This document shows, one piece after another, positions 26,490 through 63,741 of a stretch of DNA of 64,000 nt. How positions within the stretch are numbered: the stretch's first letter is position 1; each line of letters begins with the position of its first letter. Below the pieces are notes generated by a model. It was given only the letters and a program-made list of their open reading frames with translations. It did no database searches and was not told where the DNA came from. Location: IMG/VR virus record IMGVR_UViG_3300032331_003609, positions 1 through 64,000 of that record. The stretch is one strand, 5' to 3'. The translations under genes and the position numbers were made by a program.

Positions 26490-29069
26490 ATGAAGAAATT
26501 ACTAACAGTTTTATTATTATTGGTATCTTTTTTGGGGTTTGGACAGGGCGTATCTGCACCAGACCCTAAATCATTTACTGCTAGTACTAGCGGTCAAGAT
26601 GCTAGCGGATTTGAATTAACAGGATTTAGTGCAACATCAACTTTACTTACATCAATCAGTTTAGTTAATCCACCTTCCGGTACAACATTCTCTTTAGGAA
26701 CAATAACAGGTTTAACTGCTGCAAGTGGATTTACTTTAACGGGTAATAAAACTCGTTTAGTAGTAACTGGAACAATGGCTAGTATCAATACGGCATTAGC
26801 ATCATTAAAGATAAACACAGGAACAATAACGGGAGATATTAATATTTCAGTAGCAGCAACTGTAAACCCAACGGGATATTATTTTAATGGTGTAAACGGA
26901 CACTTTTATAAACCCGTATCAACCGGAGCATATTACACAGTAGCTAGAGATGCAGCATTAGCAACAACATTCAAAGGACAGAAGGGATATTTGGTAACAA
27001 TTACTTCTGCAGATGAAGATGCATTTATTTATAATAATGTACCTCAATCAAATATTTGGTTTGCATTAACCGATGAAGTAAGTGAAGCTAGATGGATAAT
27101 AGATGCTGGACCTGAAAAAGGAACTCTGATTAAAATAAATAACGGACAAACAAACGGAAACATTCCTGGTCAATATAACAACTGGGCAGGTGGTGAACCA
27201 AACAATAGTGGTAACGAAGATTATGCAGTAACTAAATGGGGTGGTGGTACTCAATGGAATGATTTACCAAATAACTTTAGTTGTGCTTATGTGATTGAAT
27301 ATGGAACTTGGAGTAATCCTGATGATGCAACATTTACTGAATTTTACACCAATTCAGTTGCACATTCAAACGGGGAAACTATTAAGGCACTATTTGGATT
27401 TAAGTTTAATAGTTCAATTGATAAAACAAAATTTTTAGCACAAATATTCAAAAGAAATGATTCATATTCAAGCTGGACAGCAGCTGATGGTTATAAATCA
27501 TTAAGCGGATTAGGTAAGGTGTATCTTTCAAATCAAATAGACACCTCAAAAGTTTTCTCGTCGGGTATTCCGTTATCAGGAGTAAGCGATATGACACAAT
27601 TTACTACTGCCGATATTGGTAAGATTTATAGAATAACTATAACCGGTGCAAATGGCGGCGGGTGGGGAACTGACATTTATACAAATGACTCGAATATTCC
27701 AGGTATGGCGGTTCATGCAGGTATTGTGGCAATCGGACAAACAAAAGAAGTTTATATTAAAGTAGTTGAGGGCCAAACAAATTATCCGGGCACAACTCGG
27801 AATGGTATATCAACATCTGATTGGGGAGGCTGGGATTTGAGTTATCAATTTGTATCTGCCCCAACATCATACAAAGCAACGGCATCACCCGGACAAGTTG
27901 AATGGTGTGCAATTAGTAAAAATTTAAACAACGGTAAAACTAGAATTCTAATTGACATGAGACAGATAGGAACTCTGGATCCTACTAAAATATCTAATTT
28001 AAAATTATTAGATGTTTATGACGGAGTGATATCTTATGTTTCCAATGACGCAACATGGGGACAATATGATATACCTTATGATATTAGTACTAAAATATTA
28101 ACATCAGCATATCCTAATAATTTTAGAGGATATAGCGGATACTACGGGGTTAGTATTGATTTTGCATTCACACAACAAGGTGCATTCAAACAGCACAAAA
28201 TGGAATTACAAGAGTATGATGCAACCCAATTAAAAGCTTTATATAATAGTATCGTAACTGTGTCCGATGTTTATTTAGCATTTAAGGAGTTAGCAAACGG
28301 TGGAATATTTGGAAATCAAACAGGTAATGAATTCACATACGGTATTCAATATAAAAACTCGGATGTTAACGAAGATGGTGTATTCAACGAGGCGGATTGT
28401 TTTGCACTATTACAAAACTTAACAGGAGCAAAAGATCTAGTAACATCATACACGTTAGATAATACTGTTAGATTGATTCCTGATTCAATTTATAATTTGA
28501 TTGGTAAATCTACTTGGAGTTCATTTCAAGATTTTAGAGGAAAGACATATAATTTTAGCTTAATGGATAACGTGTTAAGCTATAACTATGATCTGGCGGT
28601 TAGTTGGAAAGGCGATGTTAACCTGTCACATTCTGCAACACCTCCATCGAATAACGTAACAACAATGTCAATCAGAACAGCAAGTGCTGCGATACTAAAT
28701 GAAATGAGCGCTGCTATTATGACTGAAGTAATTGGAGATAGCGTTTATGCTTATATTACTATCGATCCTTTACAGCAAAATGTAGTTGGAACACAATTTC
28801 AACTAAATTATGATAATTCAATGTTAAAATTCAATAATGTAACATTTAAAACTAAAGGTTCACCTATGAACTATGGCAATGATAAAGGTTCATATATTAA
28901 TTTAGGATCTTTAATTAGTGATGGAACAACATCTTTAGATAACACAACAGAGTATAAAATATCATTTACAGCAAAAAGTAAATTGGATAACGTATTTGGT
29001 TTAATCTCTATCGGAACAACCGATGCAGTAAATAAATCTGGGATACAATTAAAAGTTAAATTAAACTAA
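26490..29069 (+). CDS. exported multidomain adhesin: C-type lectin + LCCL + dockerin + cohesin
   Basis: WAGGEPNNSGNEDY...WNDLP (C-type lectin); WGTDIYTNDSNIPGMAVHAG...RNGISTSDWG (LCCL); DVNEDGVFNEAD (dockerin); VVGTQFQLNYDNSML (cohesin). Confidence 0.8.
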   Translation: MKKLLTVLLLLVSFLGFGQGVSAPDPKSFTASTSGQDASGFELTGFSATSTLLTSISLVNPPSGTTFSLGTITGLTAASGFTLTGNKTRLVVTGTMASINTALASLKINTGTITGDINISVAATVNPTGYYFNGVNGHFYKPVSTGAYYTVARDAALATTFKGQKGYLVTITSADEDAFIYNNVPQSNIWFALTDEVSEARWIIDAGPEKGTLIKINNGQTNGNIPGQYNNWAGGEPNNSGNEDYAVTKWGGGTQWNDLPNNFSCAYVIEYGTWSNPDDATFTEFYTNSVAHSNGETIKALFGFKFNSSIDKTKFLAQIFKRNDSYSSWTAADGYKSLSGLGKVYLSNQIDTSKVFSSGIPLSGVSDMTQFTTADIGKIYRITITGANGGGWGTDIYTNDSNIPGMAVHAGIVAIGQTKEVYIKVVEGQTNYPGTTRNGISTSDWGGWDLSYQFVSAPTSYKATASPGQVEWCAISKNLNNGKTRILIDMRQIGTLDPTKISNLKLLDVYDGVISYVSNDATWGQYDIPYDISTKILTSAYPNNFRGYSGYYGVSIDFAFTQQGAFKQHKMELQEYDATQLKALYNSIVTVSDVYLAFKELANGGIFGNQTGNEFTYGIQYKNSDVNEDGVFNEADCFALLQNLTGAKDLVTSYTLDNTVRLIPDSIYNLIGKSTWSSFQDFRGKTYNFSLMDNVLSYNYDLAVSWKGDVNLSHSATPPSNNVTTMSIRTASAAILNEMSAAIMTEVIGDSVYAYITIDPLQQNVVGTQFQLNYDNSMLKFNNVTFKTKGSPMNYGNDKGSYINLGSLISDGTTSLDNTTEYKISFTAKSKLDNVFGLISIGTTDAVNKSGIQLKVKLN

Positions 29070-41873: not shown

Positions 41874-42602
41874 ATGTCCAAGAAAAAAGTCTGCATAATC
41901 ATACCTGCTAGATTGGGTAGTTCTAGATTTCCTAATAAACCTTTGGTTGATATAGGAGGTAGGAGCATGATACAAAGGGTATATGAAAGATGTAAGGAAT
42001 CATATGCTAACGAAGTAATAGTATCAACGGAAGATCAATTAATATACGATCATGTAAAGAAATTTGGTAAATGCGATTTGACCCCAAAATTTGAAAACGG
42101 AACACTAAGAGTTTGCCACACAGCTTCTTCTTTAATTAACGAATTCAGCCACATCATAAACGTACAAGGCGATGAGCCATTCATAGATCTTGCATTTCTC
42201 AATAGATTTATTAGGGATCTTTCCGACATAACACCAGGAAACGTATTGACAGGTGCTGAGGATAATTCTATATTATCTGAGGCTCAAAGAAAAAATCCAA
42301 ATGCCGTTAAATTTATTTCTGCAAAAGATAAATTTATTTCAGGATTTACCCGAAGTCCATTCTTTGTACATGTAAGCGGAATCTATAAGCACATCGGGGT
42401 ATATGGATTTTGCTCTGAGGATATAGAATCTATATCATTAATGGAGACAACAGAATTATCAAAAAGAGATTCTTTAGAGCAGATAACATGGATGGAAAGA
42501 GGCTTTAATATTAAGTATACTGTCTCTTATAATAAATCCATATCTATAGATACACCAGAGGATTTAAGCTTAGCTACGAGCATCTTTTTATCCAATAAGT
42601 AA
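41874..42602 (+). CDS. kdsB: 3-deoxy-manno-octulosonate cytidylyltransferase (CMP-Kdo synthetase)
   Basis: IPARLGSSRFPNKPL, NVQGDEPFI, YKHIGVYGF, SLEQITW, SIDTPEDL. Confidence 0.9.
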   Translation: MSKKKVCIIIPARLGSSRFPNKPLVDIGGRSMIQRVYERCKESYANEVIVSTEDQLIYDHVKKFGKCDLTPKFENGTLRVCHTASSLINEFSHIINVQGDEPFIDLAFLNRFIRDLSDITPGNVLTGAEDNSILSEAQRKNPNAVKFISAKDKFISGFTRSPFFVHVSGIYKHIGVYGFCSEDIESISLMETTELSKRDSLEQITWMERGFNIKYTVSYNKSISIDTPEDLSLATSIFLSNK

Positions 42603-46784: not shown

Positions 46785-47238
46785 CATCTAAACAAAAAAG
46801 TTCTTTAAAATATTGGTTGTTAAAGTTGAAGCGGCAGAATTTGGTACATCAAAAATCAATTATGCAAGGAAACAGTTTGGTCTCGTATCAAATTTATCCA
46901 AACACTATCTTACCCGTTCTAATAGGGTAGATGCATCGGACGCCAAGCGACTGGTGAAAAATTTAGATATTCTGAAAAGAAATTCAGGGCGGCTGACCGG
47001 CCTTAAGGGTTAGAGAATCGTTCACTTAATGGACAACCCCAAATCTGGGGATTCTCAGCGAACAACAACTAATTAATAAAATACTATCCGATGCGGGATA
47101 GGGAGTTACATCAAGGCAAACGAAAAAAAAACTCCCTTTCAATATTCTCGGTAAGTTATTTCTAAAATGCAATTCACAAATTTGTGTTTGTTTATAATAT
47201 AGGAAGAAGCTTATCGTCAATCGGTAGGCTTTTTTTTT
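46785..47238 (+). ncRNA. structured Y-RNA-like locus upstream of Ro60
   Basis: Own promoter elements (TATATTTG 46767, CATATATAAA 46775) and terminator. Two units GA(A/T)GCGG-N10-TACATC at 46828 and 47090, whose N10 pairs downstream, flank a multi-stem central domain closed by GCATCGGA/TCCGATGC. Confidence 0.6.
47207..47238 (+). terminator. intrinsic terminator between the RNA locus and the TROVE gene
   Basis: AAGCTTATCG/CGGTAGGCTT 10-bp stem (GU pairs) plus T-run. Confidence 0.7.
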
Positions 47239-47260
47239 GTCAAAAATTAAAAACAAACAT

Positions 47261-48898
47261 ATGAGCAAGTTATCAGAATACGCAGTTAAATCCAAATCAG
47301 AAACTAGAAAATACGAGGACCTAGTGGTAGAGAATTTTATGGGGGGTAATTCCTATAAACTTTCTCCCTTGCAAACTCTTAAAATAGTGGCTGCTAGTTC
47401 TATCTTCGGTGAGCCTCAGTATTATAAGAATGGCATAAAATCTGAGGCATCTATCAAGAATCATGATACACTATTGGAATATTCTATATTTTCAGATCTT
47501 ATTAAGGATTCTACCTCTGCTGCAGATGTTTTTACGAACGCTATTGACTCATCCTTAGATTATGACTTCAAGGGAACTTTAGACTTAGCTACGGAGCTAA
47601 GAATGCTGTTTTTGATGAGGTTAAACCCTGCTGTCATTTTCATACGAGCTTCAATTCATTCAAAAAGAGCTGAATTCAATGAATCTAATCCAGGTTACAT
47701 GAAAACTGTCGGTAAATCGATAGCTCTTAGACCAGATGATCTGACAAATCAATTTGAGTATTTCATGTATGTGAATAAGACTAAAAACAAATTGAGCTCA
47801 ATCGTTAAAAGAACATGGGCAGAAAGACTTGGAGAATATTCAAAATATCAACTGAACAAATATAAAGGAAAGAGTCTAATTGATCTTGTTAGGATTTCAC
47901 ACGCTTGGAATAATAACATAGATGAGTTAATGAAGACCGGATCTATTAAGGTTGAGGAATCGGAAAGAACCTGGGAGAATTTAAAATCCAGCGGAAAGAA
48001 CTGGAAAGAAATCCTAGAGACTATCGAAATTCCGCACATGGCACTTTTAAGAAATCTAAGAGGTATTTTTAAAGAGATCGAAGATTTAGAAATTGCTAAA
48101 TCAGTCATGGAAAAATTATCTGCTGGTGTTTCTAAAGGAAATCAATTCCCTTTTAGATATTGGTCAGCATACAAAGCGGTAGAGAAAGAAGATGAGATCA
48201 ATCATAAAGGAATTATCTTAGATGGACTAGAATCTTGTATGGACATCTCAGTTTTAAATATGCCAAAGCTTGTTGGGAAAACCATATGCCTTTCTGATAA
48301 TTCAGGATCTTCTTGGGGACAATTGGCTTCCGAATACGGAAGTGTTCACGCAGCAGAGATAGCAAACCTTTCTTCCCTAATTACAGGTAAGCAGTCAGAC
48401 GAAGGTGAAATAGGATTATTCGGAGACAAACTTATCGTTGAATCAGTTTCTAAAAGAAACGGTTTACTTTCCCAATTAAAGGCAGTTAATGCGGTAGAAA
48501 GAGATGATAGTAGATTAGGTGGAAGTACAGAAAATGGTATTTGGATTTTCTTTGATCAAGCAATTAAAGAGAAAAAGCATTACGATAACATTTTCATATA
48601 TTCAGACATGCAAGCTGGGCATGGAGGTTTATATGGTAGCGACCCTAGCGAATATGAGGATTTCGTGCACAGCAAAGGAGGATGGAGATACATTGACGTT
48701 CTAGCTCTTGTTTCTAAATATAGAAAAGAGGTGAATCCGAAAGTTAATATTTTTTCAGTTCAGGTTGCAGGGTATGATAATACAGTATTACCAGAAAATA
48801 TTTATAGAGGAGCGATTTTAGCTGGATGGACAGGAAAAGAACCAGTTTTTGCTAAGGCATTAATCGATACCTGGAATGAAATAGAATCTACCAAATAG
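47261..48898 (+). CDS. rsr: Ro60 / TROVE-vWA RNA-binding protein
   Basis: NFMGGNSY, SIFGEPQYY, KYQLNKY, LIDLVRISHA, PHMALLRNLR, PFRYWSAY, and vWA SDNSGSS and IYSDMQ. Confidence 0.9.
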   Translation: MSKLSEYAVKSKSETRKYEDLVVENFMGGNSYKLSPLQTLKIVAASSIFGEPQYYKNGIKSEASIKNHDTLLEYSIFSDLIKDSTSAADVFTNAIDSSLDYDFKGTLDLATELRMLFLMRLNPAVIFIRASIHSKRAEFNESNPGYMKTVGKSIALRPDDLTNQFEYFMYVNKTKNKLSSIVKRTWAERLGEYSKYQLNKYKGKSLIDLVRISHAWNNNIDELMKTGSIKVEESERTWENLKSSGKNWKEILETIEIPHMALLRNLRGIFKEIEDLEIAKSVMEKLSAGVSKGNQFPFRYWSAYKAVEKEDEINHKGIILDGLESCMDISVLNMPKLVGKTICLSDNSGSSWGQLASEYGSVHAAEIANLSSLITGKQSDEGEIGLFGDKLIVESVSKRNGLLSQLKAVNAVERDDSRLGGSTENGIWIFFDQAIKEKKHYDNIFIYSDMQAGHGGLYGSDPSEYEDFVHSKGGWRYIDVLALVSKYRKEVNPKVNIFSVQVAGYDNTVLPENIYRGAILAGWTGKEPVFAKALIDTWNEIESTK

Positions 48899-52244: not shown

Positions 52245-53141
52245 ATGAAAGTAATTTGGGTCCTAGAAAATATTAAAAAGGGACATAAATTTTTTTTACC
52301 AGAAATAGAGCTTCTTGGATTAATTGCTTCTGTATCTAACTGGAAGATCCTGTATCCAAAAACATCCACCCATCTTTATTGCGATTCATCAGTTTTAGAA
52401 TATCTAGATAAAATAGAGATATCAGATCTTTGGGAAACAATACACACGAATGAATTAGATTCCCCGGATCTAATAGACAGAAACCCATTCTGGGCAGCTT
52501 CAAAAATTAAAGTCATAAAGGAAATAGAAGCTCCATTTATAATAATGGATTGCGATCTTTATTTCAAAGATCAATGTTTAGATCTTGATTCATTTTCAGA
52601 ATTTGATATAATTACAAACCAAATAGAGGATGGGATAGGATACTATCCTACAAAAAGGGATTCAGTTATAAAAGACATGATAGATCCATTCGGATACAAA
52701 TCAAGCCATGCATTCAATGTTGCATTTCTTTATATAGGAGATGAAAGGATCAGAAAAGAATATACAGATCTGGCATATTCCTGGATGGAGGATCTTTCTA
52801 TGAAGAACGAAGAATCTTTAAGTGGAAAGTATATGATTTTTTGTGAGCAAAAAATGCTAAAGGAATTTGCTGATCTTTATGATGCTAAAATAATATGTCT
52901 AGCAGATCATTCGATAAAAGGAGCTGAGGAAAAGATCCCTATAATAAATGGGTATAAAACATTGAATCTTAATGATTCTAATTATGTTCATTTGCATAGA
53001 CTAAAATCAAGGGTTAAATCAAATACAGGTTTGTTCCTTGATACCAGAAGTGATGTTATTAAATCAATTTATAATTTAGATAAACTGATGGCTAAGCGAT
53101 CTTTTTCTGCTCTTAAGCTTTCTAATGAGGATCTATTCTAA
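52245..53141 (+). CDS. glycosyltransferase-like protein (DUF6734-like)
   Basis: FWAASKIKVI...PFIIMDCDLY (DxD), FNVAFLYI, IFCEQKML, YVHL. Confidence 0.6.
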   Translation: MKVIWVLENIKKGHKFFLPEIELLGLIASVSNWKILYPKTSTHLYCDSSVLEYLDKIEISDLWETIHTNELDSPDLIDRNPFWAASKIKVIKEIEAPFIIMDCDLYFKDQCLDLDSFSEFDIITNQIEDGIGYYPTKRDSVIKDMIDPFGYKSSHAFNVAFLYIGDERIRKEYTDLAYSWMEDLSMKNEESLSGKYMIFCEQKMLKEFADLYDAKIICLADHSIKGAEEKIPIINGYKTLNLNDSNYVHLHRLKSRVKSNTGLFLDTRSDVIKSIYNLDKLMAKRSFSALKLSNEDLF

Positions 53142-53760
53142 CCTTTCTTTTGTCTGATATGATAAAATCATAAACTTTTTTATCATCCATTTCTACCCCA
53201 ATATAATCAAGCATTCTTTTTATCTCTTCTATATTATGATCTACATATAGATCTTCATAATAAAAAATTGGCCATGATTTTTCTTCGGCTATTAACTTCA
53301 TTCTTTCCGAGAAGTGTAAAAACGAATTTGTTTCCTTCTCTATTCTTACTTTATCTATTTTATCTATTTCGTATATCTTAGGGATATCCCATCCCATTTT
53401 AGAATCTGCATTTACTAAAAGACTTTCAGCCTGTAGTCTTTTGTCTCTCCTATCCAGAACTATAACTCTTTCAAAAAATCCATCCATCCAATTTATGAAT
53501 TCTATTTCTTCTAGCCCTAAAGATTTTACCGGATGTTGACTACATCCAAAAAGTGTTTTTATTAAGATCTTATCGAATTTTAAAAGAGGATTTATGTGAT
53601 CAAAATCAAATCCTTTTCTATAATAGTCCACATAATTTCTTGGGTTAAATGGCTCATAGAAGCATTCAAAGCCTTCTGAATAGAGTTGTGATTCTAGCAT
53701 CCTATATAAAGAAGTTGAGCCAGTTCTGGGTCTAGCCAGTATTGCTATTTTATTAAACAT
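53122..53760 (-). CDS. sulfotransferase-like protein
   Basis: ILARPRTGSTSL, YEPFN, LDRRD...AES, YYEDLY. Confidence 0.75.
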   Translation of the reverse strand: MFNKIAILARPRTGSTSLYRMLESQLYSEGFECFYEPFNPRNYVDYYRKGFDFDHINPLLKFDKILIKTLFGCSQHPVKSLGLEEIEFINWMDGFFERVIVLDRRDKRLQAESLLVNADSKMGWDIPKIYEIDKIDKVRIEKETNSFLHFSERMKLIAEEKSWPIFYYEDLYVDHNIEEIKRMLDYIGVEMDDKKVYDFIISDKRKVRIDPH

Positions 53761-54318
53761 TTATAATAATTTATTGACATCTTTATTTTTTCTAAGCCTT
53801 TGACCATACGGAAATTGTTTGTTTTCTAATTCTGGTATATTTAAATAATCCAGTATTCTTTCAAATCCGTTGTTATAATATAATTCTTCGTATGATATAT
53901 TAAAATAACCTTTATCTAAATAATTATCTTTTATTCCTAGTTTTATCTCGTTAAAATATGATGTATCAGCATCTTTGATCAGTTCTTCTTTAAATACCCA
54001 ATTTCTATCCCAATTATTTGTTTTATTAGCATTTAACCATGATTCGATTTGTTCTGTTGCATTCTCTCTATATAGTATAATCGTTTTATCACACACTGAT
54101 AATAATTCAGAAAAGTCTACTTCTGGGTAATATGTTTCTTTAATTAAAAGATGTTGTGTACTATATTCCCAAGATTTAGGGGATGTTCCGTTCTTAAACC
54201 ATTCTTTATCGGAACTAGTTATTGGTTCGAATAGTGTTGTAAATTTTTTATTAAAATAAAACCAATTTGCTAAATTTGTTGAACCACTTCTTGGCTCTGC
54301 TAAGATTGTGATTATCAT
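53761..54318 (-). CDS. sulfotransferase-like protein
   Basis: ILAEPRSGSTNL, FEP, LYREN..EQIES, SYEELY. Confidence 0.75.
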   Translation of the reverse strand: MIITILAEPRSGSTNLANWFYFNKKFTTLFEPITSSDKEWFKNGTSPKSWEYSTQHLLIKETYYPEVDFSELLSVCDKTIILYRENATEQIESWLNANKTNNWDRNWVFKEELIKDADTSYFNEIKLGIKDNYLDKGYFNISYEELYYNNGFERILDYLNIPELENKQFPYGQRLRKNKDVNKLL

Positions 54319-54320: not shown

Positions 54321-54762
54321 TTAAATTATTTTATTTATAATTTTAGATTTAATTAACGTATATCTTTCAATATCAAACATCTCAGGTTTAAAATCTAAAT
54401 ATTCCTTCCATTGCCATTGGTGACCTGTTATGTTATAAGAGCTATTCATATAAAAATTATAAAGCTCGTCACAATAGACTGGTTCGGGTAATTTTCCGCC
54501 TACCCTTTTATTTGTTTAATTAATCCGGTAGAGTTGTTATAGACAATAACAATGTGAGATTTATTTAAATCCGGTGTTGCTTCTCTTAGTTCTATTAATG
54601 TGTCTTCATAATTACATCGGCCACAATTACCCATTCTTGCAATCATTTCGATAGAATAATGCTTTTCTAAATCAACCCAATAATATCCAATAAGATAGAG
54701 CCTATTTTATTTCCAACGATACTATCAATTATTTTTAATTGATGTGATCGAGATGATGCCAT
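54321..54762 (-). pseudogene. frameshifted gene (or homopolymer assembly error)
   Basis: Three consecutive reading segments join by -1 shifts in A4 runs (54705-54708, 54506-54509) into a 147-aa ORF that begins TAATG-coupled and ends ...KIINKII like its neighbours. Confidence 0.5.
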
Positions 54763-54902
54763 TAATTCAAGTGTTTATCTTTTATAGCATTCACAAAAGC
54801 TTGAAATGCAGTAGCAACCTTTGCTTTTAAATCTGCAGATACCGGTGTTACCGTTGTCTTAATTATTTGTAAGGGTCTTTCTATTCTTTCTTTCTTTGCC
54901 AT
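54762..54902 (-). CDS. small hypothetical protein (46 aa)
   Basis: Translated by hand: MAKKERIERPLQIIKTTVTPVSADLKAKVATAFQAFVNAIKDKHLN. Confidence 0.65.
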   Translation of the reverse strand: MAKKERIERPLQIIKTTVTPVSADLKAKVATAFQAFVNAIKDKHLN

Positions 54903-54932: not shown

Positions 54933-56435
54933 TTAAGGCTCAAATTTTTGGTTACCACCCCATCTACATGTTGGACACCATGTTTCATAACACCAGTTTC
55001 CGCAATACGTAGAACTACACCAGCATGTTGGATTGTGCATTATACTGTATAGTCCTTCTCCGATATCAACTAAGAATAAATCGGAAGGTTCAAAATCTAA
55101 ACCATAGATTGTTTTGATTGCATATTCCATTTCTAATCCGGTAATTGCTACTGTTGTCAATTCGTTTGTCTCGGAATCTGTTATTACTAATTTATCCCCG
55201 ATGTAAAAATTGTTTACATTTTCAAATCTTGTTTCGGTTGATCCTAATTCTTCAATAAAATATTTACAGCTTGGTGTATCTACCCAAGAAAGTCCATTTT
55301 CTAACGTGATTCTAATATGTATGGTGTCAACTTGTGCTGAAACAATTTCTTGTAAAGATGTGCTTAATTTTGTTAAAGTAGCATTTGCTTGGGCTAAATC
55401 GCAATCCCATCCATAGGTTTGCAAATTCTCTAGATTTGGGGTACCCCCAAGATTCCCATTTAAATCCGTGAATTGTATGGATCTCATATAATCACCTATT
55501 TGAATCGTACTTAAATCCGCTAAAGTTCCGTCATATTTTAAAATTTTGCTATCTTCTTCTAAGTGATAATTCACAAGACCAAATTTTCCTAAGGCCTTTG
55601 TAATGTATTTATATCTGCTCTTCTGCTTAAATTCTCTAGATCCATCTTTAAATTCATTCTGTGAAAATGAAACAGGAAGAACAGCAGATTGCTTATAGCA
55701 GCCCATGTTGATAATATCAATTTCTGAACCATATAGAATATCTATACTCCTGATAACACTATATTTTCCTTCTTCCAGATTCTGAACATCATATACAAAT
55801 TCTTGTAGCATGTTATTTTCCGGAAGATTAAGATTTGATTTCATTGCTCCAAATTCGGTTTCATTCTGGATAGAATAAATCGCGGGAAGTTGCATTGGAT
55901 CATATTGAGGATATCTGTGTTTTTTAATGAGATTTGGTTCATCCACGTTTGAATAGTCAAGAACATCTAATGTATCCAAAGATAATTCTCCTCCAAAGTA
56001 TGTTTTAGGTATAAATTCAGACCCTTCCATTAACTTAAAAAACTCAAATTTGTCTGCACAGTATGTTTCGTCTATTAGTGCTGTTGTATCAAAAGATTGT
56101 CTAAGAATGAATTTATGGTCAGCATCTTCTATATAAGGAACAGTAACGGAATTAGCGCTAACAATATGCGGAATATATGTTATTTCATTCTCCTCACATT
56201 TTTCCTTCAATATTTCCTCAAATCTGTGGGGGAAATTGAGAGGTAGAAATGCTTCGGTATCTGTGTATATGTAATGAAATTCTGTGATGTTATTCAGAAC
56301 CAGCATAGAGAATAAGGGCGCATAATCTAATAAATCTGCACCATTATTATAAATAGTTGTGTTTGTGTTAATCTCTAGAATTTTTACATCTTCCCCTGTT
56401 TGTAATAAATCGCTACCAATTATAGTTGCTTTCAT
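54933..56435 (-). CDS. circularly permuted ATP-grasp-like domain + Hint domain + Cys/Trp-rich C-terminal peptide
   Basis: N-terminal GSDLL...ILEINTN (ATP-grasp D..E.N), then LIKK and MLQEF; Hint-like LEEDSKILKYDG..IQIGDYMRS ... IYGLDFEPSDLFLV...IMHN; then PTCWCSSTYCGNWCYETWCPTCRWGGNQKFEP. Confidence 0.7.
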   Translation of the reverse strand: MKATIIGSDLLQTGEDVKILEINTNTTIYNNGADLLDYAPLFSMLVLNNITEFHYIYTDTEAFLPLNFPHRFEEILKEKCEENEITYIPHIVSANSVTVPYIEDADHKFILRQSFDTTALIDETYCADKFEFFKLMEGSEFIPKTYFGGELSLDTLDVLDYSNVDEPNLIKKHRYPQYDPMQLPAIYSIQNETEFGAMKSNLNLPENNMLQEFVYDVQNLEEGKYSVIRSIDILYGSEIDIINMGCYKQSAVLPVSFSQNEFKDGSREFKQKSRYKYITKALGKFGLVNYHLEEDSKILKYDGTLADLSTIQIGDYMRSIQFTDLNGNLGGTPNLENLQTYGWDCDLAQANATLTKLSTSLQEIVSAQVDTIHIRITLENGLSWVDTPSCKYFIEELGSTETRFENVNNFYIGDKLVITDSETNELTTVAITGLEMEYAIKTIYGLDFEPSDLFLVDIGEGLYSIMHNPTCWCSSTYCGNWCYETWCPTCRWGGNQKFEP

Positions 56436-56467: not shown

Positions 56468-56773
56468 TTATAAAATCGTCCTAAAATCCTTTATTTTTAT
56501 AATTTTACCATATTTAGCATCGACTTCTTTCCATTTGCCCTTTGGACATGGTTCAGATTCCATACTAAATATCTTCCTATTTATGGGACATCCACAGCTT
56601 CCACAAATTGCTGACCATGATTTTTTTTTAAGTATTTCAGTGTAATGTTCACACCCCGAATTATCTGCATCTCCCTGACATATTAGCAACCTTTCCTGTG
56701 AGTTTGCCCTTTCGATCTCTGTTGGGTTTTTAGACCTTTTCCAAGCATTGAATATCTCTATAAAATTTATCAT
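56468..56773 (-). CDS. small Cys-rich (Zn/Fe-S) protein
   Basis: RLLIC...GCEH...ICGSCGC...K...CPKGKW. Confidence 0.7.
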   Translation of the reverse strand: MINFIEIFNAWKRSKNPTEIERANSQERLLICQGDADNSGCEHYTEILKKKSWSAICGSCGCPINRKIFSMESEPCPKGKWKEVDAKYGKIIKIKDFRTIL

Positions 56774-57498
56774 ATTAATGTTCTATTAGATTTGACGATG
56801 TCATACCTATCATAGATAGAATTATAGCGCGTGATGAATTCGTCATCTAGTTTTAGATTACATTCGAAATGTTGGCTTCCGTTTGATTTTTCCATTTTAA
56901 AAGGCTTACCAATTTTATTAGATACCCATTTTTCTAATTCGTCAAATTTTCCAAATTCGAACCAAGTTATATTAGGGTCGTTGTTGTGCCAATATGAAGT
57001 TGGTCTAAATATAATTTCGAACATATTTCCTAAATATGTATCATATTTTTCATCCATCCCAATTTTTTTTATGAATTCACTGACTGTATTACGTAATGCT
57101 TCTGTAGTAAAAATATCGGTATCTTTATAAAATAGAATATCATTTACGTTTAATTTTTGTAATATAGTACTATATTTTTCCCCATGCTCAAAGTGTATCA
57201 TGTCAATTAAATGCTTCCAGACTGAAATGAATCGTTCATGTCTATTTCTCCTTATTGCAATTATTTCATATTGATCTCCAAAGTGTCTTTTTAGATTTAA
57301 TATACCCTCATGCAGATGAAGCATGATGTCTGCAAGATATTCATTATCCAATTTTAAATCGATGTTAGCATTGTGCTTATCTATGATCTTTTGTTCGCCA
57401 TGCTTTACGTCCAATTCACTACGCAAACAAGATATGTAAAAAGAAGTAGATGCACATCTAGGTAAACTAATAAATAAAAAATTGTTTTCTATTAACAT
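56770..57498 (-). CDS. sulfotransferase-like protein (Sulfotransfer_2 type)
   Basis: FISLPRCASTSF, HLH, IRRNRHERFISVW. Confidence 0.7.
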   Translation of the reverse strand: MLIENNFLFISLPRCASTSFYISCLRSELDVKHGEQKIIDKHNANIDLKLDNEYLADIMLHLHEGILNLKRHFGDQYEIIAIRRNRHERFISVWKHLIDMIHFEHGEKYSTILQKLNVNDILFYKDTDIFTTEALRNTVSEFIKKIGMDEKYDTYLGNMFEIIFRPTSYWHNNDPNITWFEFGKFDELEKWVSNKIGKPFKMEKSNGSQHFECNLKLDDEFITRYNSIYDRYDIVKSNRTLI

Positions 57499-58722
57499 CT
57501 ATATTAAAGATTTTTGTTTTTGTTTGATTCCTTTATTTATTATGTCGTAGGAGAATTTACCAAATGTAATACTAGCTTCATCTGCAAATATATCGGCTAG
57601 ATCTTTTTTTGGTTTAAAATTATACGAAGAATCTATTATTAAATCTAAAGGATGTGGCAAATCCCCTGCTAAATCATTCACTTTTTTCCAAAAATTGGTA
57701 TCTGTTCTATTTGTCAAATAATGATAATAAATAAAAATCATATTTTGTGTATTGATAGAATTAACAAATTTATTATATTTTTCTAAAGTAATTTTTTTGG
57801 AAATAACCTCATTGAATACTTCTAGTTGTAAAATTACAGTCATTATTGAAGTGGCCTCTAATGGCTCTAAAAATCCGGTGCTTAATCCTATTGCCAAGCA
57901 ATTTTCAATCCATACATTTTCGTATGATCCTGGTTTAAATTTAATTTGTCTATTAAATTCAACAGAATGTCCTACCCATTCTATTATTTCTTTTTTGGCA
58001 TCATCTTCAGTAATTTCAGTTGAGTCAAATATGTAGCCACACCCCATTCTTGTCTGGAGTGGTATCTGCCACATCCATCCATGTTTCATAGCGATAGATT
58101 TGGTTGTTGTTTTTATGTCAGTAATCTTGTTTGGTAAAAAAAACGGAATTGCGGTATTTACTTTTAAATGAGATTCGTACGAAATCCAATTTGATTTATA
58201 ATGATTACCGATTAATAATCTTTTAAAACCGGAGCAATCAATAACAAATGATGCATCAATCGTTGAATCTGTTGTCTTAAGCCCAATAATTCTGTTTTCG
58301 TCACTTGCTACTGTTTCGGTTACAATACCTTCGATCCAATTAACCCCCCGTTCGATCGATAAGGATTTAAGGTATTTTGCTAATAATCTAGCATTAAAAT
58401 GGTACGCATATCCTTGGCCTTTTACTTTATAATCAATCGGATGATGATACGCAAGATTAGGCTCTGTCCAATTTTCAAAATCAATACCTGTTTTAAATGT
58501 TGCCTCGCAATTTTTGATCATATCATCAGATGTGATCCCTAGCTCATTTAAAAATTTTACAATATTACCAGTAGTTCCTTCACCCGCACCCAATATTCCG
58601 ATCTCATCACTTTCGATTAATGTTATTTTTGAATTTTTAAATTTACTATTTAAATACAACGCTGACAACCATCCTGCTGTACCCCCGCCAACTATAACAA
58701 TATTATCTAAATTATATTTCAT
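57499..58722 (-). CDS. tryptophan halogenase-like flavin-dependent enzyme (PrnA family)
   Basis: GGGTAGW, GAGEGT, ATFKTGIDF, YHFNA, IDCSGF, GWMWQIPL, GLSTGFLEPLEATSI. Confidence 0.9.
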   Translation of the reverse strand: MKYNLDNIVIVGGGTAGWLSALYLNSKFKNSKITLIESDEIGILGAGEGTTGNIVKFLNELGITSDDMIKNCEATFKTGIDFENWTEPNLAYHHPIDYKVKGQGYAYHFNARLLAKYLKSLSIERGVNWIEGIVTETVASDENRIIGLKTTDSTIDASFVIDCSGFKRLLIGNHYKSNWISYESHLKVNTAIPFFLPNKITDIKTTTKSIAMKHGWMWQIPLQTRMGCGYIFDSTEITEDDAKKEIIEWVGHSVEFNRQIKFKPGSYENVWIENCLAIGLSTGFLEPLEATSIMTVILQLEVFNEVISKKITLEKYNKFVNSINTQNMIFIYYHYLTNRTDTNFWKKVNDLAGDLPHPLDLIIDSSYNFKPKKDLADIFADEASITFGKFSYDIINKGIKQKQKSLI

Positions 58723-58723: not shown

Positions 58724-59368
58724 CTATATTAACGATTTTTGTTTTTTGATAAATTCAAATCCAACATTTCCAGCTAAAACCATCCTATCCTTTGTTGAAT
58801 CCAGCGCGTGCTGTGGAGAGTGAGGTAGATCTGATTTCATTATTATAAAATCCCCTTCTTTTGGTAATATAAAATATTCGCAATCATCTTCACCTTTAAT
58901 ATACAAAGTGCCATCATCATCTTTTAAATTGTCAGGCATTTGAATATAATATATCCACGTAAAATGAGGTATAAATGTATTTCTTTTTTGATTTATTTCT
59001 GTATGTATGTGGTATTGGCGTAATTCGCTTTCGATATTATAGAATTGTACAGGATTTTTAGCTCTAACTACGTTTACCCAGCAATCTGTACTTATTTTAT
59101 TAAATGGTAAATTATACTCCATTTCGAAGATCTTAATGCATGATTGGATTCCAAAAATTAAAATTTCGTCTAATTTATTTTCAATCTTAATTTCTCCAAC
59201 AAAATTTAAATCATTACTTTCCTCGAAATAACCATAGCCATCTTGTGTGACATTAGGTAAGCCTTCAATAATTTCGTTGCACTTTTTTAAAATGTCATTT
59301 TTAAAATCCAGGAGATTTAATACATCTTTATATAAATACGTGATCCTATCATAGATTATCTTTTCCAT
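58724..59368 (-). CDS. putative 2OG-Fe(II) oxygenase
   Basis: YHIH, WIYYIQMP, GTLYI, PKEGDFIIMKSDLPHSP, RMVLAGN. Confidence 0.7.
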   Translation of the reverse strand: MEKIIYDRITYLYKDVLNLLDFKNDILKKCNEIIEGLPNVTQDGYGYFEESNDLNFVGEIKIENKLDEILIFGIQSCIKIFEMEYNLPFNKISTDCWVNVVRAKNPVQFYNIESELRQYHIHTEINQKRNTFIPHFTWIYYIQMPDNLKDDDGTLYIKGEDDCEYFILPKEGDFIIMKSDLPHSPQHALDSTKDRMVLAGNVGFEFIKKQKSLI

Positions 59369-59373
59369 AAAAA

Positions 59374-59838
59374 TTAAATAATAGATTTGGTTGTATGTGG
59401 TTCTAAAACATTATTTACATTAATTTTTAAATAATATTTTGTACCACTGAGAATTTTATTATTTCCGCATTTAATGTTAGGAAAAAAAGTTATCATATCT
59501 CCTGGTAGATTATTCATATGTAAATTTTTATTAGTTTCCTCATTTAGAAATATAAAATTCCCTCCCTTAAAATCTGAATTTAATACTAGCAATAATGTAA
59601 GATCATACCCGGGTTGGCTTAAAAAAACAGGTTCAGTATTTTCTGTAGATATGCTGTAAAATTTTATATCATTTATAGACATACCGCTCCCGTTGTATTT
59701 CATCTTATTCAAATGCTCTTTTAATTTTTGAGCCAAGAAATCATTGCTGGTGGATAATTCATTTTTAAAATCATACAAAAGACTATTACATTCCTCAGAT
59801 GATATAAAATTTTTTAAACATGTAACTCGTTTTTCCAT
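59374..59838 (-). CDS. degenerate 2OG-Fe(II) oxygenase-fold protein
   Basis: LTLLLVLNSDFKGGNFIF...PGDMITF...GTKY; the metal-ligand His residues appear absent. Confidence 0.65.
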   Translation of the reverse strand: MEKRVTCLKNFISSEECNSLLYDFKNELSTSNDFLAQKLKEHLNKMKYNGSGMSINDIKFYSISTENTEPVFLSQPGYDLTLLLVLNSDFKGGNFIFLNEETNKNLHMNNLPGDMITFFPNIKCGNNKILSGTKYYLKINVNNVLEPHTTKSII

Positions 59839-60401
59839 TATATTAAGTTCTGTTTACCTAATTTTGTTTTAACTAACCCGATCCAATTTACCAAAGAATA
59901 TCGCACACCTTTTTGAATAGGGGTTACTCTATGTACCAATCTTGAATTAAACACATATAATGTTCCAATTTTGTTTTCTATTGTTACATGTTCTCCTTTA
60001 ATATTTTTAATCTCTAATATACCCCCCGTATACATTTCGTTTAGTTGAATTACTATTGACATAAACCTGTCTTTATATACTAAATCCGTGCTATCTGTGT
60101 GCCAATCAAAGTATTCCCCCTCTTTATATTCGGTAAATTGATATTGCCCCAATTTGGTAGCTTCCATACCGTTTATATCGAGAGAGTTCCTTAATTTGCT
60201 TGTTAATCTTTTATTTAAAAATCCCAAATCAGATATCCAACCAACCGACGATTTTCTGTTTATTTTATTAAGGGGTTTTTTAGCTGTCTCACCATATACA
60301 GTGGCAGGTGATAAAATTAATTCTTCCTTGCATTTATTTAAAATGAAATCACATTCTTCTTTAGAAAGAAAATTTTTGAAAATACCGATATAATCGTTCA
60401 T
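59838..60401 (-). CDS. 2OG-Fe(II) oxygenase (PKHD type)
   Basis: QFTEY..GEYFDWHTD, SIVIQLN..YTGG, HRVTPIQKGVRYSLVNW. Confidence 0.9.
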   Translation of the reverse strand: MNDYIGIFKNFLSKEECDFILNKCKEELILSPATVYGETAKKPLNKINRKSSVGWISDLGFLNKRLTSKLRNSLDINGMEATKLGQYQFTEYKEGEYFDWHTDSTDLVYKDRFMSIVIQLNEMYTGGILEIKNIKGEHVTIENKIGTLYVFNSRLVHRVTPIQKGVRYSLVNWIGLVKTKLGKQNLI

Positions 60402-60415
60402 TATTGAATGTAATT

Positions 60416-60748
60416 TTATGTGATATTTCTAATTATTATTGTTAGAGATATGCAAATCCATATGGTATTAAAAGCAACTAATGTTGGCAGATTTTTTTTC
60501 ATAGAAGCCCATATCAAAAGAGAAGAAGTGAGAAGTGTTAAAAAGTGCATATACCAAAGTTCTATTCCAAAAACTAATCCGGGTATAATGATCATGGCCT
60601 TTGTAAGCCACGCTGCAAACTCTATTGTATTATAATCCGTCCAGTAATTCTTATCAAGAAACATTTTATACCTATCAAGTATCTTCCCCCACCCTATTAT
60701 GTAATAGAGTAATATATTAAAAGCAGCAAAGACCAGCACGTATTTCAT
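60416..60748 (-). CDS. multi-TM membrane protein
   Basis: About four hydrophobic segments. Confidence 0.7.
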   Translation of the reverse strand: MKYVLVFAAFNILLYYIIGWGKILDRYKMFLDKNYWTDYNTIEFAAWLTKAMIIIPGLVFGIELWYMHFLTLLTSSLLIWASMKKNLPTLVAFNTIWICISLTIIIRNIT

Positions 60749-60772
60749 TTTTAAACGATATTTAATTATATC

Positions 60773-61252
60773 CTATATTAGGGTTTTTTCTTTCTTTTCT
60801 ATTCCTATATAGAATGAAATTAAACTAAATCTACTTCCCCTGATAACATTTAAAACCCGATGCTTTATTTTTTTATGCAGCATTATGCTATAATTCATTT
60901 GAGGCGTTATTTTTATTTTTTGATTCTTAAAAATATACTCAAATTCACCGCCATCAAAATCTTCATTAATATATGTAACAATGGTTAAATCTGCTTTATC
61001 GTTATGAAAATCGTCATTAATATTTGTTTTATCGGTTACCTTGTTAATCCATAAGCCGCTTAACTCGTAGCCGTTTGGTAAATATTTTGAGCATTTTTCC
61101 TGATATTCTAGCAGATCTTTTTCCGCGTTTAATATTTTTCTAACGTAGTAATTATTTCCATCAGGTACCTGGGTTTCTACAAAATCCGAGCATATCAAAC
61201 CTAAAAAAAGCAGATCCTTCTCTGACAACAGATTTTGGTGTGTGTTAATCAT
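60773..61252 (-). CDS. 2OG-Fe(II) oxygenase
   Basis: FHND, IVTYINEDFDGGEF, HRVLNVIRGSRFSLISF. Confidence 0.85.
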   Translation of the reverse strand: MINTHQNLLSEKDLLFLGLICSDFVETQVPDGNNYYVRKILNAEKDLLEYQEKCSKYLPNGYELSGLWINKVTDKTNINDDFHNDKADLTIVTYINEDFDGGEFEYIFKNQKIKITPQMNYSIMLHKKIKHRVLNVIRGSRFSLISFYIGIEKKEKTLI

Positions 61253-61264: not shown

Positions 61265-61474
61265 CTATTTCTTAAGTCCGTACTTAATCCATCTATACCA
61301 AATTCTCTCATGTAAGTAATATTGAATTGGTTTATAGATTAATTCTGCTACCCCAAATGCTGCTCCTACTTTAATGGAACCGCTTATTAACCACATTAAT
61401 AAGAATCCAATCACCGTACTTACTATGCGATATGAGATTGTTTTTGCTATATGTCTTTTTCTTTCTACTATCAT
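61265..61474 (-). CDS. DUF2061-like small membrane protein
   Basis: RHIAKTISYRIVST...YYLHERIW. Confidence 0.75.
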   Translation of the reverse strand: MIVERKRHIAKTISYRIVSTVIGFLLMWLISGSIKVGAAFGVAELIYKPIQYYLHERIWYRWIKYGLKK

Positions 61475-61851
61475 TATCCTTTTGTTTCGTCATAGGTAAT
61501 AGATCCGTCTGGTGTCATATGTCCGGTTCTGATTGCAGTTCCGCTTATCGCCGCAACATCTACTGGTGGTTCATGGTAGATCACGTCATATCCAACCCCA
61601 CGTCCGTAGTTTACACTCTCAATGTCAGGAATTACCGAAATTAGAAGTCTCCCTGTTTGTATGTAATCATTTAAAGCAACCTTTAGTTCGTCAAAAACTT
61701 GTTGGGAAGATTTAGGATTGTTCTCATCCTGCGGGACATCCCTGATTGCAACCCAAACGTTTTTTCCCTGGCTGAATTGTTGGTCTATTAACCACTGATG
61801 GCCTTTATGCCAGTTCTGCCATCTCCCGATATAAAGTGAGTATTTTTTCAT
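61474..61851 (-). CDS. HIGH-superfamily nucleotidyltransferase (NadM/cytidylyltransferase-like)
   Basis: YIGRWQNWHKGH and ISGTAIR motifs. Confidence 0.8.
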   Translation of the reverse strand: MKKYSLYIGRWQNWHKGHQWLIDQQFSQGKNVWVAIRDVPQDENNPKSSQQVFDELKVALNDYIQTGRLLISVIPDIESVNYGRGVGYDVIYHEPPVDVAAISGTAIRTGHMTPDGSITYDETKG

Positions 61852-62285
61852 ATAGATTCTAGATTTAGAAGTGAGATAAGTTCCTCGAGGGATTCTTCAG
61901 GATTATCCCCATTTGTGAAAGTTTTATGATTGCTTACAGGGAATTCAAATGTTCCTACGTGGAATTTTTCTTTCCCCGAGAAATGTGGCCGATTGAAAAG
62001 AACTTCTATCACCTCATTATTCGCTTTTAGATCCTCCCTAATTGCACGATAAGGACAAACCATACTTATCACTACATCATGTCCCTTTTGGCTCATAAAG
62101 CGAGCTATAGTGAACGATTTTTCGATGTTTCTGATCCTTCCAGAGTATGAATAATCGGTATTTGGGAAGATCTCTCTTAGATCATCTCCATCTATCCAAA
62201 TAGTGCTATTCCCAAGTTTTTTTACCAGCCTGCTAGCCATCTCGGTCTTTCCCGTTCCTGGCTGTCCGATGAATAAATAAATCAT
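61848..62285 (-). CDS. cysC: adenylyl-sulfate (APS) kinase
   Basis: GQPGTGKT, IDGDDLRE, DYSYSGRIRNI, VISMVCPY. Confidence 0.8.
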   Translation of the reverse strand: MIYLFIGQPGTGKTEMASRLVKKLGNSTIWIDGDDLREIFPNTDYSYSGRIRNIEKSFTIARFMSQKGHDVVISMVCPYRAIREDLKANNEVIEVLFNRPHFSGKEKFHVGTFEFPVSNHKTFTNGDNPEESLEELISLLNLESI

Positions 62286-62514: not shown

Positions 62515-63741
62515 ATGGTCTGGAATTACAAAGACACATTGCTAGTTCACGTTGAGCTTTCTAATATGTGTAATGCTGCTTGTCCGCTTTGTCCAAGATA
62601 CGTGAATAACTCATTAAGAGTCAATCCCGAGCTTGATTTGGGTAGTGTTTCATTAGAAGATTTTAAAAAATGGTTCCCCTTAGATTTTGTTCAGAAAAGT
62701 AAAAGCTGGATATTTTGCGGAACCAATGGTGATCCTATAATGGCAAGGGATGTTTACGAAATACTGGAATATGTACTTCGCAATTCGGAAGCGAAGGTTC
62801 AGGTAAACACTAACGGATCCATCAGAGATGGGGAATTTTGGGAAAAAATGGGAGCATTATTTGCAGAACCCTGTGTCAATAGTAGATACGTTGTTTTTTC
62901 AGTCGATGGATTGGAAGACACAAATCACATCTATAGAAGAAACGTCAAATGGGATAGGGTGATGGAAAATATGGGAGCATATTCCAAATCGGGTTCTACC
63001 GGAATTTGGGATTTTTTAATATTTAAACACAACGAACATCAGTTAGATGAGGCAGAGGCACTTTGTAAAAAAATAGGATTAGCGTTTTCTCCAAAAAGAC
63101 CTTTCGGGTTTGAGACAGGAAACCCAGATGAATATCAGGATCTAATGGTTTATGATTTAGATGGCAATTTTTTATACAGGATAGAACCTGCTAGCGAAGA
63201 GTGGAGATTAAACAGATCCCTCAATAAATTTCAAAAAGGGGAAGAAAAAATATGGGTTCCCGGGAAGGAGAAAAAAAGTAAGGATCAGACAGAAGAAAAA
63301 TGGAACGGATTAATAGAAAGAGATCTTCCTAAATATCAATTTCCAGAAAGATTCAAGGGAAAATCTGTTAGCTGTAAATCATGCCATCCTATAGGAAAGG
63401 AAATATACGTTGACTGTAAGGGTAATGTTATGCCTTGCTGTTTTGTAGGAACAATGTACAATAGTGATTTTCAACACCACGAAGCATTGCAGATCAAAAA
63501 GCACTTACAAGATTGGGGGTTAGATAAAATAAATTTAAACAACCATTCTCTTGAAGAAATATTAGACAGCAAGTATTTAGACGATGTATTTGCAAATAGA
63601 TGGGATGGTGCTAAAAAGGATGAGGATAAAATGGGATATTGTTTCAATACATGTTCGGTTGATCATATGAAAGACCTTTTCGTTAGAAAGGAGGAATTAC
63701 CTATATCCCCGGAAAAACACGAGATAAAAAGTCTTATATAG
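62515..63741 (+). CDS. radical SAM protein with SPASM/twitch domain
   Basis: CNAACPLC (CxxxCxxC), GTNGDP, SVDGL; C-terminal C...IYVDCKGNVMPCC...CFNTC. Confidence 0.9.
   Translation: MVWNYKDTLLVHVELSNMCNAACPLCPRYVNNSLRVNPELDLGSVSLEDFKKWFPLDFVQKSKSWIFCGTNGDPIMARDVYEILEYVLRNSEAKVQVNTNGSIRDGEFWEKMGALFAEPCVNSRYVVFSVDGLEDTNHIYRRNVKWDRVMENMGAYSKSGSTGIWDFLIFKHNEHQLDEAEALCKKIGLAFSPKRPFGFETGNPDEYQDLMVYDLDGNFLYRIEPASEEWRLNRSLNKFQKGEEKIWVPGKEKKSKDQTEEKWNGLIERDLPKYQFPERFKGKSVSCKSCHPIGKEIYVDCKGNVMPCCFVGTMYNSDFQHHEALQIKKHLQDWGLDKINLNNHSLEEILDSKYLDDVFANRWDGAKKDEDKMGYCFNTCSVDHMKDLFVRKEELPISPEKHEIKSLI

Follow-up and report, generated by a model that had tools for sequence, protein, structure and literature searches.

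An ATP-grasp-like and Hint domain protein with a putatively releasable Cys-rich tail from an uncultured virus

Does a viral protein that joins a ligase-like domain to a Hint domain cut off its own Cys-rich end, and is that end the substrate of the ligase and of the enzymes encoded around it? The question is raised by a gene in IMG/VR record IMGVR_UViG_3300032331_003609, of which positions 1 to 64,000 (64,000 nucleotides, the window throughout this text) were analyzed; the window is part of a contig of 244,850 bp (locus L016). The gene is an open reading frame (ORF) at 54933..56435 on the minus strand and encodes 500 amino acids (aa), arranged as an ATP-grasp-like domain, a Hint domain and a Cys-rich tail. 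Features lie on this strand unless the plus strand is named. A preliminary description made from the sequence had regarded the product as ligase and precursor in one, with a tail whose residues match the neighboring enzymes. The answer reached here is that a self-processing enzyme-plus-cargo protein, consisting of an ATP-grasp-like ligase, a Hint domain and a releasable Cys-rich tail, is about an even prospect, and that the halogenase, 2-oxoglutarate (2OG) oxygenase and sulfotransferase-like neighbors are not tied to the Cys-rich tail.

Domain architecture and predicted release of the tail

A word-indexed search yielded at least 561 full-length homologues of 492-501 residues and 57-99% identity, all named 'hypothetical' and none with a Pfam domain. 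Members with identities as low as about 22% were reached by an exhaustive HMMER search, in which the family falls into 271 clusters at 50% identity. The 500-aa ORF is a real gene under selection. When 28 close homologues were used as input, AlphaFold returned a predicted local distance difference test score (pLDDT) of 53.5; 128 diverse sequences gave a usable model, with a pLDDT of 89.7, a predicted template modeling score of 0.86 and pLDDT values below 50 solely at residues 471-500. This model and Foldseek searches bear out the three-part architecture of the preliminary description, and the motifs that it quoted (YH-LEEDS, TPSC, His467-Asn468, Pro469 and the N-terminal ..LEINTN..) are each present in the ORF.

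The Hint domain comprises residues 291-468 (55032..55565). Foldseek against the PDB returned about 45 Hint structures with E-values of 5e-8 to 1e-4 and target-normalized TM-scores (TMt) of 0.7-0.8, including Hedgehog 1at0 (E 9e-8, TMt 0.73), the bacterial intein-like (BIL) domains 2lwy (TMt 0.82) and 6y75, and many mini-inteins; TMt values to the two BIL domains were 0.75-0.82. A profile built only from the 83 members that carry no extra Hint domains matched the KlbA intein in the PDB at E 2e-8 and the VMA and PolII inteins at about 5e-4 (profile positions 290-449). The boundaries given earlier agree with the Foldseek and KlbA matches and with the AlphaFold model, in which the Hint fold is seen at residues ~290-468. 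This first Hint domain (Hint1) has no match to the Pfam Hint models, including PT-HINT.

The residue equivalent to position 1 of inteins (residue 291) is His in 36, Lys in 18 and Ile in 6 of the 83 relatives, with others in the remainder, and is never Cys. Block-B positions 387-390 vary across the family and read TPSC in the window protein, which has no TxxH. His467 is kept in 79/83 and Asn468 in 82/83 relatives, the latter being the most constant residue of the Hint domain; Tyr replaces His467 in three tail-less members. The loss of the N-terminal nucleophile and of TxxH, described before for the window protein, is therefore a trait of the family. At +1 the residue differs between members, with Ala, Pro, Ser, Val and others; Cys, Ser or Thr account for 13/83, and the window protein has Pro469. 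Inteins without the first nucleophile can still cleave their C-terminal junction by Asn cyclization, which is established chemistry. Because a +1 nucleophile is lacking, cleavage rather than splicing is expected of the family Hint domain, which appears to be reduced to C-terminal cleavage chemistry. Judged from conservation, the predicted cleavage site is His467-Asn468 (55032..55037), at the bond to Pro469.

The predicted released piece is the tail of 32 residues (469-500; 54936..55031), which is rich in Cys, Trp and Tyr. It contains 6 Cys, 4 Trp and 2 Tyr, as first described, together with 6 Ser/Thr, where five had been counted, and a Lys fourth from the end. Cys makes up 17% of the tails versus 0.5% of the remaining protein, so the tail is not a chance feature; Gly, Pro, Tyr and Trp are also enriched. 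The sequence after His-Asn cannot be aligned between subfamilies and ranges from 21 to about 150 residues in length. The Cys count is 6, 8, 10, 12, 14 or 16 in about 100 of the 102 Cys-rich tails, and these even counts point to paired cysteines, i.e., disulfides. In the close subfamily six Cys and one Gly of the tail are invariant, and pairwise identity is 0.43 at the non-Cys tail positions versus 0.64-0.66 in the two domains. With a value of 0.66 for the Hint domain, the homologues display the conserved core and variable Cys-rich tail that had been anticipated. Lys occurs among the last four tail residues in 58/83 members (expected 7%). The window tail has no match in Pfam. A metallothionein-like tail was ruled out by the aromatic-rich composition and the even Cys counts.

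Other members of the family carry further domains at this end. In P0122, P0127, P0226, P0235, P0247 and P0267 one or two extra canonical Hint domains (Cys1...His-Asn-Lys) are present, typically after the Cys-rich piece, and score as PT-HINT, Intein_splicing or Vint; in P0155, P0158 and P0185 the Cys-rich piece is followed by a Peptidase_S74 chaperone and self-cleaving domain. The order is reversed in P0268, in which the extra Hint domain precedes the Cys-rich piece. The tail Cys count of the multi-domain members is even once Cys1 of the second Hint domain is set aside, and the Peptidase_S74 junction would leave a C-terminal Lys on the tail. The far end of the tail is thus bounded in three unrelated ways, by a stop codon, a Hint domain or an S74 domain, which argues that the tail is meant for excision. 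Bounding by self-cleaving domains is the best comparative evidence for tail release, and it renders the release more plausible than when it was first proposed. The extra Hint domains end in ..VHNK at the extreme C-terminus and seem to have been inserted at either end of the tail.

The N-terminal domain (residues 1-285; 55581..56435) resembles a glutathionylspermidine synthase (GspS)-type, apparently circularly permuted ATP-grasp ligase, as judged from the model. Ranked after the Hint structures, the ATP-grasp matches of Foldseek in the PDB were 3n6x (E 5.7e-5) and 2io7/2io8 (about 1e-4 to 1.5e-4), with probabilities of 0.99-1.0 and, for the whole model as query, TM-scores of 0.22-0.27 over 350-380 columns. 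E21, N23, R112, D122 and R229 are invariant across the 128 sequences, and D9, D104, D116 and K172 nearly so (D9 and K172 at least 90%); tail type makes no difference to the invariance of the ligase residues. The first hairpin of the model (strands 2-13 and 16-23) bears Asp9...Glu21-x-Asn23 (56367..56411), the presumed Mg/ATP-site triad. It is followed in the model by a Rossmann-like unit, a Lys strand and a 'QEF' hinge ('LQEF' at residues 209-213), and this succession from triad to hinge is the order expected of a permuted ATP-grasp. The roles assigned to D9/E21/N23 as metal site, to the Lys in ATP binding and to the hinge are putative. The D..E.N motif, compared before to permuted ATP-grasp ligases, fits the GspS-like fold. 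Matches to the RimK model of Pfam are weak (3/17 members, best E 0.019); no significant model for the domain was found in Pfam, NCBIfam or PHROG, and its profile had no match among the PDB sequences.

The whole protein has no match in Pfam, PHROGs or NCBIfam. No match to the gene was found in isolated phages (50,697 phage records; tblastn and megablast), and two peptide patterns retrieved no relatives from 185,579 GTDB genomes. In a fold search of BFVD all matches were viral proteins with a Hint domain and the complete architecture was seen in none of them, and locus searches from single proteins of distant subfamilies gave few or no loci. The protein family is unannotated and was encountered here only in viral and metagenomic contigs, which reach 324 kb among the relatives. 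In the literature searched (papers and preprints) no text combines ATP-grasp, Hint and phage in this sense; the statement that the ligase-Hint-peptide architecture had not been described agrees with this and with the databases consulted.

Conserved neighboring genes

Neighbors were counted in 83 independent loci of the close subfamily of the window protein. A 242-aa protein, a 101-aa protein, the ligase-Hint protein and a 46-aa peptide form a conserved four-gene core, a widespread viral module whose other three genes share the strand of the ligase-Hint gene and nearly abut. The most constant partners, the 46-aa ORF and the 101-aa protein, are absent from the preliminary description. The 46-aa, 101-aa and 242-aa proteins have no match in Pfam.

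The 46-aa ORF (54762..54902) ends in ..IKxKHL(x) and is a candidate partner or substrate of the ligase. Of the 79 loci with enough space for it, 78 have it on the same strand, 26 bp downstream of the ligase-Hint gene. Its length is ~41-49 aa across loci, without family assignment. The motif ..[FL][VT]xx[ILV][KR]x[KA]H[LST] is kept beside the distant members P0122, P0155, P0160, P0210, P0240 and P0250, and small ORFs of this kind are located at L001 11504-11647, L003 11531-11671, L006 2233-2370, L007 3080-3229, L095 1954-2097 and L096 5288-5425. The P0190 subfamily has a different, Thr/Asn-rich downstream ORF of 25-29 aa ending in ..LIVxxNS (L088 9071-9148; L089 2140-2229; L090 3779-3868).

The 101-aa Cys-rich protein (CxxC...CxxCxC...C; 56468..56773) is encoded directly upstream, at a distance of ~55 bp, in 76/83 loci, and may be a zinc ribbon. 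Homologues are found in nearly all distant contexts (L007, L088-L093 and L096). Across the whole family a protein of 93-101 aa with CxxC...CxxCxCP...CP stands upstream or downstream of the gene, e.g., at L007 3251-3538, L088 9163-9444, L089 3359-3664 and L096 3060-3347. The 242-aa protein (56770..57498; 75/83 loci) has 338 homologues, all hypothetical and without a Pfam domain. It contains the P-loop-like 'PRCASTS' and 'RNRxERFIS', which are taken here to be motifs like those of the site for 3'-phosphoadenosine-5'-phosphosulfate (PAPS); its label as sulfotransferase-like derives from these two motifs alone, and its profile had no sulfotransferase match among the PDB sequences.

Further upstream, 57499..58722 encodes a flavin-dependent Trp-halogenase homologue of 407 aa (Pfam Trp_halogenase, E 7e-97), present in 56/83 loci, whose PDB matches include RebH, PrnA and the viral VirX1. 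The solved Trp halogenases that it matches are 497-550 aa long and the alignments stop at about query residue 350-400; the window halogenase may therefore lack some of the C-terminal substrate module that such enzymes usually have. The region 58724..61252 contains 2OG-Fe(II) oxygenase homologues and unassigned ORFs. Four such oxygenases had been proposed, of which the one at 59838-60401 passes the Pfam threshold (64/83 loci) and only two others are found, both weak (58724-59368, 68/83; 60773-61252, 16/83). A nucleotidyltransferase-like gene (weak Pfam match) and an adenosine-5'-phosphosulfate (APS) kinase gene follow at 61474..62285 and may represent a virus-encoded supply of PAPS. This pair recurs beside distant members (L007, L090), where it is often accompanied by a DUF2061 membrane protein. 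On the other side of the core, 53122..54318 encodes two sulfotransferase-like P-loop proteins, with homologues in 50/83 and 19/83 loci and also beside distant members. Of the sulfotransferases named earlier, the P-loop motifs and a single sub-threshold Sulfotransfer_3 match stand, and a firm assignment does not.

A radical S-adenosylmethionine (SAM)/SPASM gene lies at 62515-63741 on the plus strand, opposite to the ligase-Hint gene. Homologues occur in 2/83 related loci, by which the SPASM radical SAM was ruled out as a partner. A SPASM gene is also found near the distant member P0250 (L095 5240-6403).

Source virus and remainder of the window

The source is likely a large, uncultured tailed phage from an aquatic habitat, as far as gene content can tell. 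Pfam and PHROG scans of ~40 window ORFs detected no virion or replication hallmark, ARAGORN found no tRNAs in the window, and the Mimivirus-type early promoter motif AAAATTGA is depleted there, not enriched. A large tailed phage is favored because the same-strand genes are tightly abutting or overlapping, an endolysin-like ORF is present, the halogenase is closest to pelagiphage and cyanophage versions, and a TROVE/Ro-like RNA-binding protein (47237-48898, plus strand) shares, across 99% of its length, 48% identity with gp540 of Bacillus phage G. A 77%-identical relative of the ligase-Hint protein (L008, IMGVR_UViG_GVMAG-M-3300009164-63_000001) is located on a 10-kb contig binned as a giant-virus metagenome-assembled genome; either the contig was mis-binned or the family truly spans different virus groups.

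The gene content of the window is of the glycan and auxiliary-metabolism type. An 859-aa protein with C-type lectin, LCCL and cohesin domains (26490-29069) and a 458-aa FG-GAP repeat protein (6039-7415), both on the plus strand, are possible adhesion or fiber proteins. Genes on the plus strand at 9350-10090, 13215-14414, 41874-42602 and 17228-18907 encode a class-3 lipase, a split E1-dehydrogenase/transketolase-like pair, a cytidylyltransferase and a carbamoyltransferase, which by their assignments appear to form a large auxiliary island for glycans or metabolites.

Proposed processing, alternative explanations and comparison with known systems

In the favored explanation, that of a self-processing enzyme-plus-cargo protein, Asn468 would cyclize to a succinimide and break the Asn468-Pro469 bond, freeing a tail peptide of ~3.8 kDa. 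The six tail Cys would form three disulfides outside the reducing cytoplasm, e.g., at lysis, oxidation being assumed. The ligase domain would make an ATP-dependent amide bond. Its substrate could be the 46-aa peptide or the freed tail, the latter through the newly formed amino end or through the carboxyl end near the Lys, and the 101-aa Cys-rich protein is a putative helper. One of these peptides may be modified by the halogenase, the 2OG oxygenases and the sulfotransferase-like proteins. A more specific version is highly speculative and is given little credence here. It proposes that the ligase joins the amino end of the tail to its own Lys-proximal carboxyl end or to the 46-aa partner, yielding a cyclic or conjugated disulfide-rich peptide, possibly halogenated or sulfated, that acts outside the lysed cell as a viral counterpart of cyclotides; the members with Hint-peptide-Hint(Cys1) would then be a natural analogue of intein-based cyclization.

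Several observations weigh against the self-processing explanation. Pro at +1 is unusual for inteins, yet it recurs in several subfamilies, and the conserved His-Asn could be structural, cleavage being a prediction. The ATP-grasp assignment is drawn from motifs and from a fold similarity of low TM-score (0.22-0.27), without a significant profile match. The tail, with its pLDDT below 50, shows no fold supporting a disulfide knot, and no signal peptide or export route for it is evident. Only 3-7 residues follow His-Asn in 8/83 members, and 17 further members have a second Hint domain and no Cys-rich piece; because such tail-less and tandem-Hint members exist, the core function can dispense with the cargo. 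The small ORF is present beside both P0210 (tail AKQLW) and P0250 (second Hint domain, no Cys piece). P0210 also adjoins the 101-aa protein, a homologue of the 242-aa protein and a halogenase 42% identical to that of the window; beside P0250 there are a 2OG oxygenase, a SPASM protein and a P-loop protein of sulfotransferase-like type. A relative without the Cys tail in the same neighborhood had been named beforehand as the case that would speak against the system, and these two members partly represent it.

The tail-less relatives bear most directly on the proposal that the locus is a pathway for a ribosomally made, post-translationally modified peptide (RiPP), with the protein as leader, enzyme and precursor and the tail modified by the halogenase (Trp), the sulfotransferase-like proteins (Tyr/Ser/Thr), the 2OG oxygenases (Pro and others) and the radical SAM enzyme (Cys). 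Trp, Tyr, Pro and Cys are overrepresented in the tails, one same-strand block contains the halogenase, 2OG and 242-aa genes in 56-75 of the 83 loci, and the APS kinase with the weakly matched nucleotidyltransferase-like gene suggests a supply of PAPS. The conserved body (identity 0.64-0.66) and the variable tail (0.43; unrelated between subfamilies) are as in a leader with a variable core, and protein-sized leaders and peptide Trp halogenases are known (PMC12537861). At the P0190-type locus L088, whose tail lacks Trp, there is no halogenase within 10 kb; the tails of L089 and L090 contain Trp, and no halogenase is found in the available sequence of these shorter loci. The match between tail residues and neighboring enzymes claimed in the preliminary description is unsupported: the SPASM gene is limited to 2/83 loci and the other strand, P0210 retains the halogenase, 242-aa and 101-aa genes, and P0250 retains the 2OG, sulfotransferase-like and SPASM genes. 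Moreover, even Cys counts fit disulfides better than thioether chemistry, and marine myoviruses without a ligase-Hint gene have such enzyme arrays (PMC2938197; PMC7824862). A RiPP-like pathway is accordingly doubtful. A tentative possibility is that the ligase acts on the ~46-aa peptide (..IKxKHL), perhaps with the 101-aa protein, and that the Hint domain and tail are accessory, serving as an appendage for autoinhibition or targeting that activation removes, or as variable cargo that hitch-hikes. No neighbor is more constant than the small ORF; it keeps its C-terminal motif next to members that are tail-less, tandem-Hint or S74, and its sequence is conserved whereas the tail varies; the ligase residues, too, are invariant across tail types. 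Small peptide substrate genes adjoin the ATP-grasp ligases of the LysW/LysX and graspetide systems. On the other side, the P0190 subfamily has another ORF in that place, the interaction with the ligase-Hint protein is purely a prediction, and the upkeep of His-Asn and of three self-cleaving modules around the Cys-rich piece is left unexplained. The claim of ligase and precursor in one stays conjectural, the 46-aa ORF being just as good a candidate substrate; that the ligase acts on the conserved small peptide is no less likely than that it acts on the tail.

Two further explanations concern the fate of the tail. It might never be released and instead be a permanent metal-binding or disulfide-stabilized module that anchors or oligomerizes the enzyme, e.g., on the virion, with a degenerate, structural Hint domain. 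Metal could be bound by the CxC/CxxC spacing, trimeric virion fibers are the normal context of Peptidase_S74 domains, and cleavage is a prediction. Against this, Cys counts of 6, 10 and 14 are common, unlike four-Cys metal sites, and the terminal Asn, the best-conserved Hint residue, has no known structural role. The module is also dispensable in some members, and AlphaFold leaves it unpacked against the protein body; a permanent tail is therefore unlikely. In the second explanation, a weapon similar to polymorphic toxins, a constant N-terminal part and a Hint release module would deliver a variable toxic peptide against competing cells or grazers after lysis. The Hint domain directly precedes a hypervariable C-terminal module, as a passage of PMC7824862 (its ref. 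105) relates of PT-HINT in polymorphic toxins. The extra Hint domains of relatives score as PT-HINT, and secreted peptide toxins typically combine a fixed Cys framework with loops that vary. Hint1 itself lacks a PT-HINT match, the N-terminal part is folded like an enzyme, a domain for secretion or trafficking is lacking, and toxic activity is conjectural. The downstream 46-aa ORF was ruled out as an immunity gene because it does not co-vary with the tail; it is conserved whatever the tail, and a co-varying immunity gene is lacking. A weapon of this kind is regarded as quite unlikely.

If the cleavage of the self-processing explanation is real, the family would be a new viral route to small disulfide-rich peptides, in which the precursor carries its own ligase and its own protease-free release module, and the cargo diversifies rapidly on a fixed Cys scaffold. 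It would also be a second natural use of Hint domains reduced to Asn-cyclization chemistry, the fused ATP-grasp/Hint pair would be usable as a tool in protein engineering, and the hundreds of clusters would represent an unexplored class of viral peptides in aquatic systems. Even without release of the tail, the four-gene core is a well-defined, widespread viral module.

Variable C-terminal cargo released by a Hint domain is of a known kind; the enzyme partner and the type of cargo are new here. BIL and PT-HINT domains share with the window protein the Hint fold, the terminal His-Asn, the lack of a +1 nucleophile and a hypervariable C-terminal piece that comes next. In contrast to them, the window Hint domain lacks Cys1/Ser1 and TxxH, so that only the C-terminal reaction would be possible, and it is fused behind an enzyme instead of the stem of a secreted or filamentous toxin. 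Its cargo is a Cys-rich peptide (20-90 residues) and not a toxin domain, and the protein matches no Pfam Hint model and lacks a trafficking domain as well as an immunity partner. The P0122-type arrangement Hint(..HN)-peptide-Hint(Cys1..) mirrors the C-intein-peptide-N-intein order of split intein circular ligation of peptides and proteins (SICLOPPS) and of engineered peptide release by inteins. It differs in having two separate full Hint domains and not intein halves; the first peptide residue is rarely Cys in the family, and the window protein has no second Hint domain. The best non-Hint structural matches of the window protein are glutathionylspermidine synthase and permuted amidoligases (2io7, 3n6x), and as in these an acidic/Asn triad precedes a Lys-bearing strand and a 'QEF' hinge. 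The window domain is much smaller (~285 aa) and lacks a sequence-profile match, and the fusion of a permuted ATP-grasp amidoligase to a Hint domain is not reported in the literature found.

Arrays of halogenase and 2OG/dioxygenase genes are known in marine myoviruses, namely T4-like cyanophages and pelagiphages (PMC2938197; PMC7824862). They resemble the surroundings of the window gene with its 2OG oxygenases, Trp halogenase, carbamoyltransferase and sulfotransferase-like proteins, and the window halogenase is 39% identical to that of HTVC008M. The arrays differ in having no ATP-grasp-Hint gene, as is the case for the HTVC008M region. The nitrile-hydratase-like, protein-sized leaders of RiPPs (PMC12537861) have in common with the window protein an N-terminal part that is large and conserved, a C-terminal core that is short and variable, and a Trp-halogenase homologue nearby. 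In the window protein the 'leader' is an enzyme plus a self-cleaving domain, so that no separate protease would be needed, and a dependence of the neighboring enzymes on the tail is unsupported. Disulfide-rich mini-proteins of the knottin and cyclotide type share with these tails an even number of Cys, a fixed framework and variable loops.

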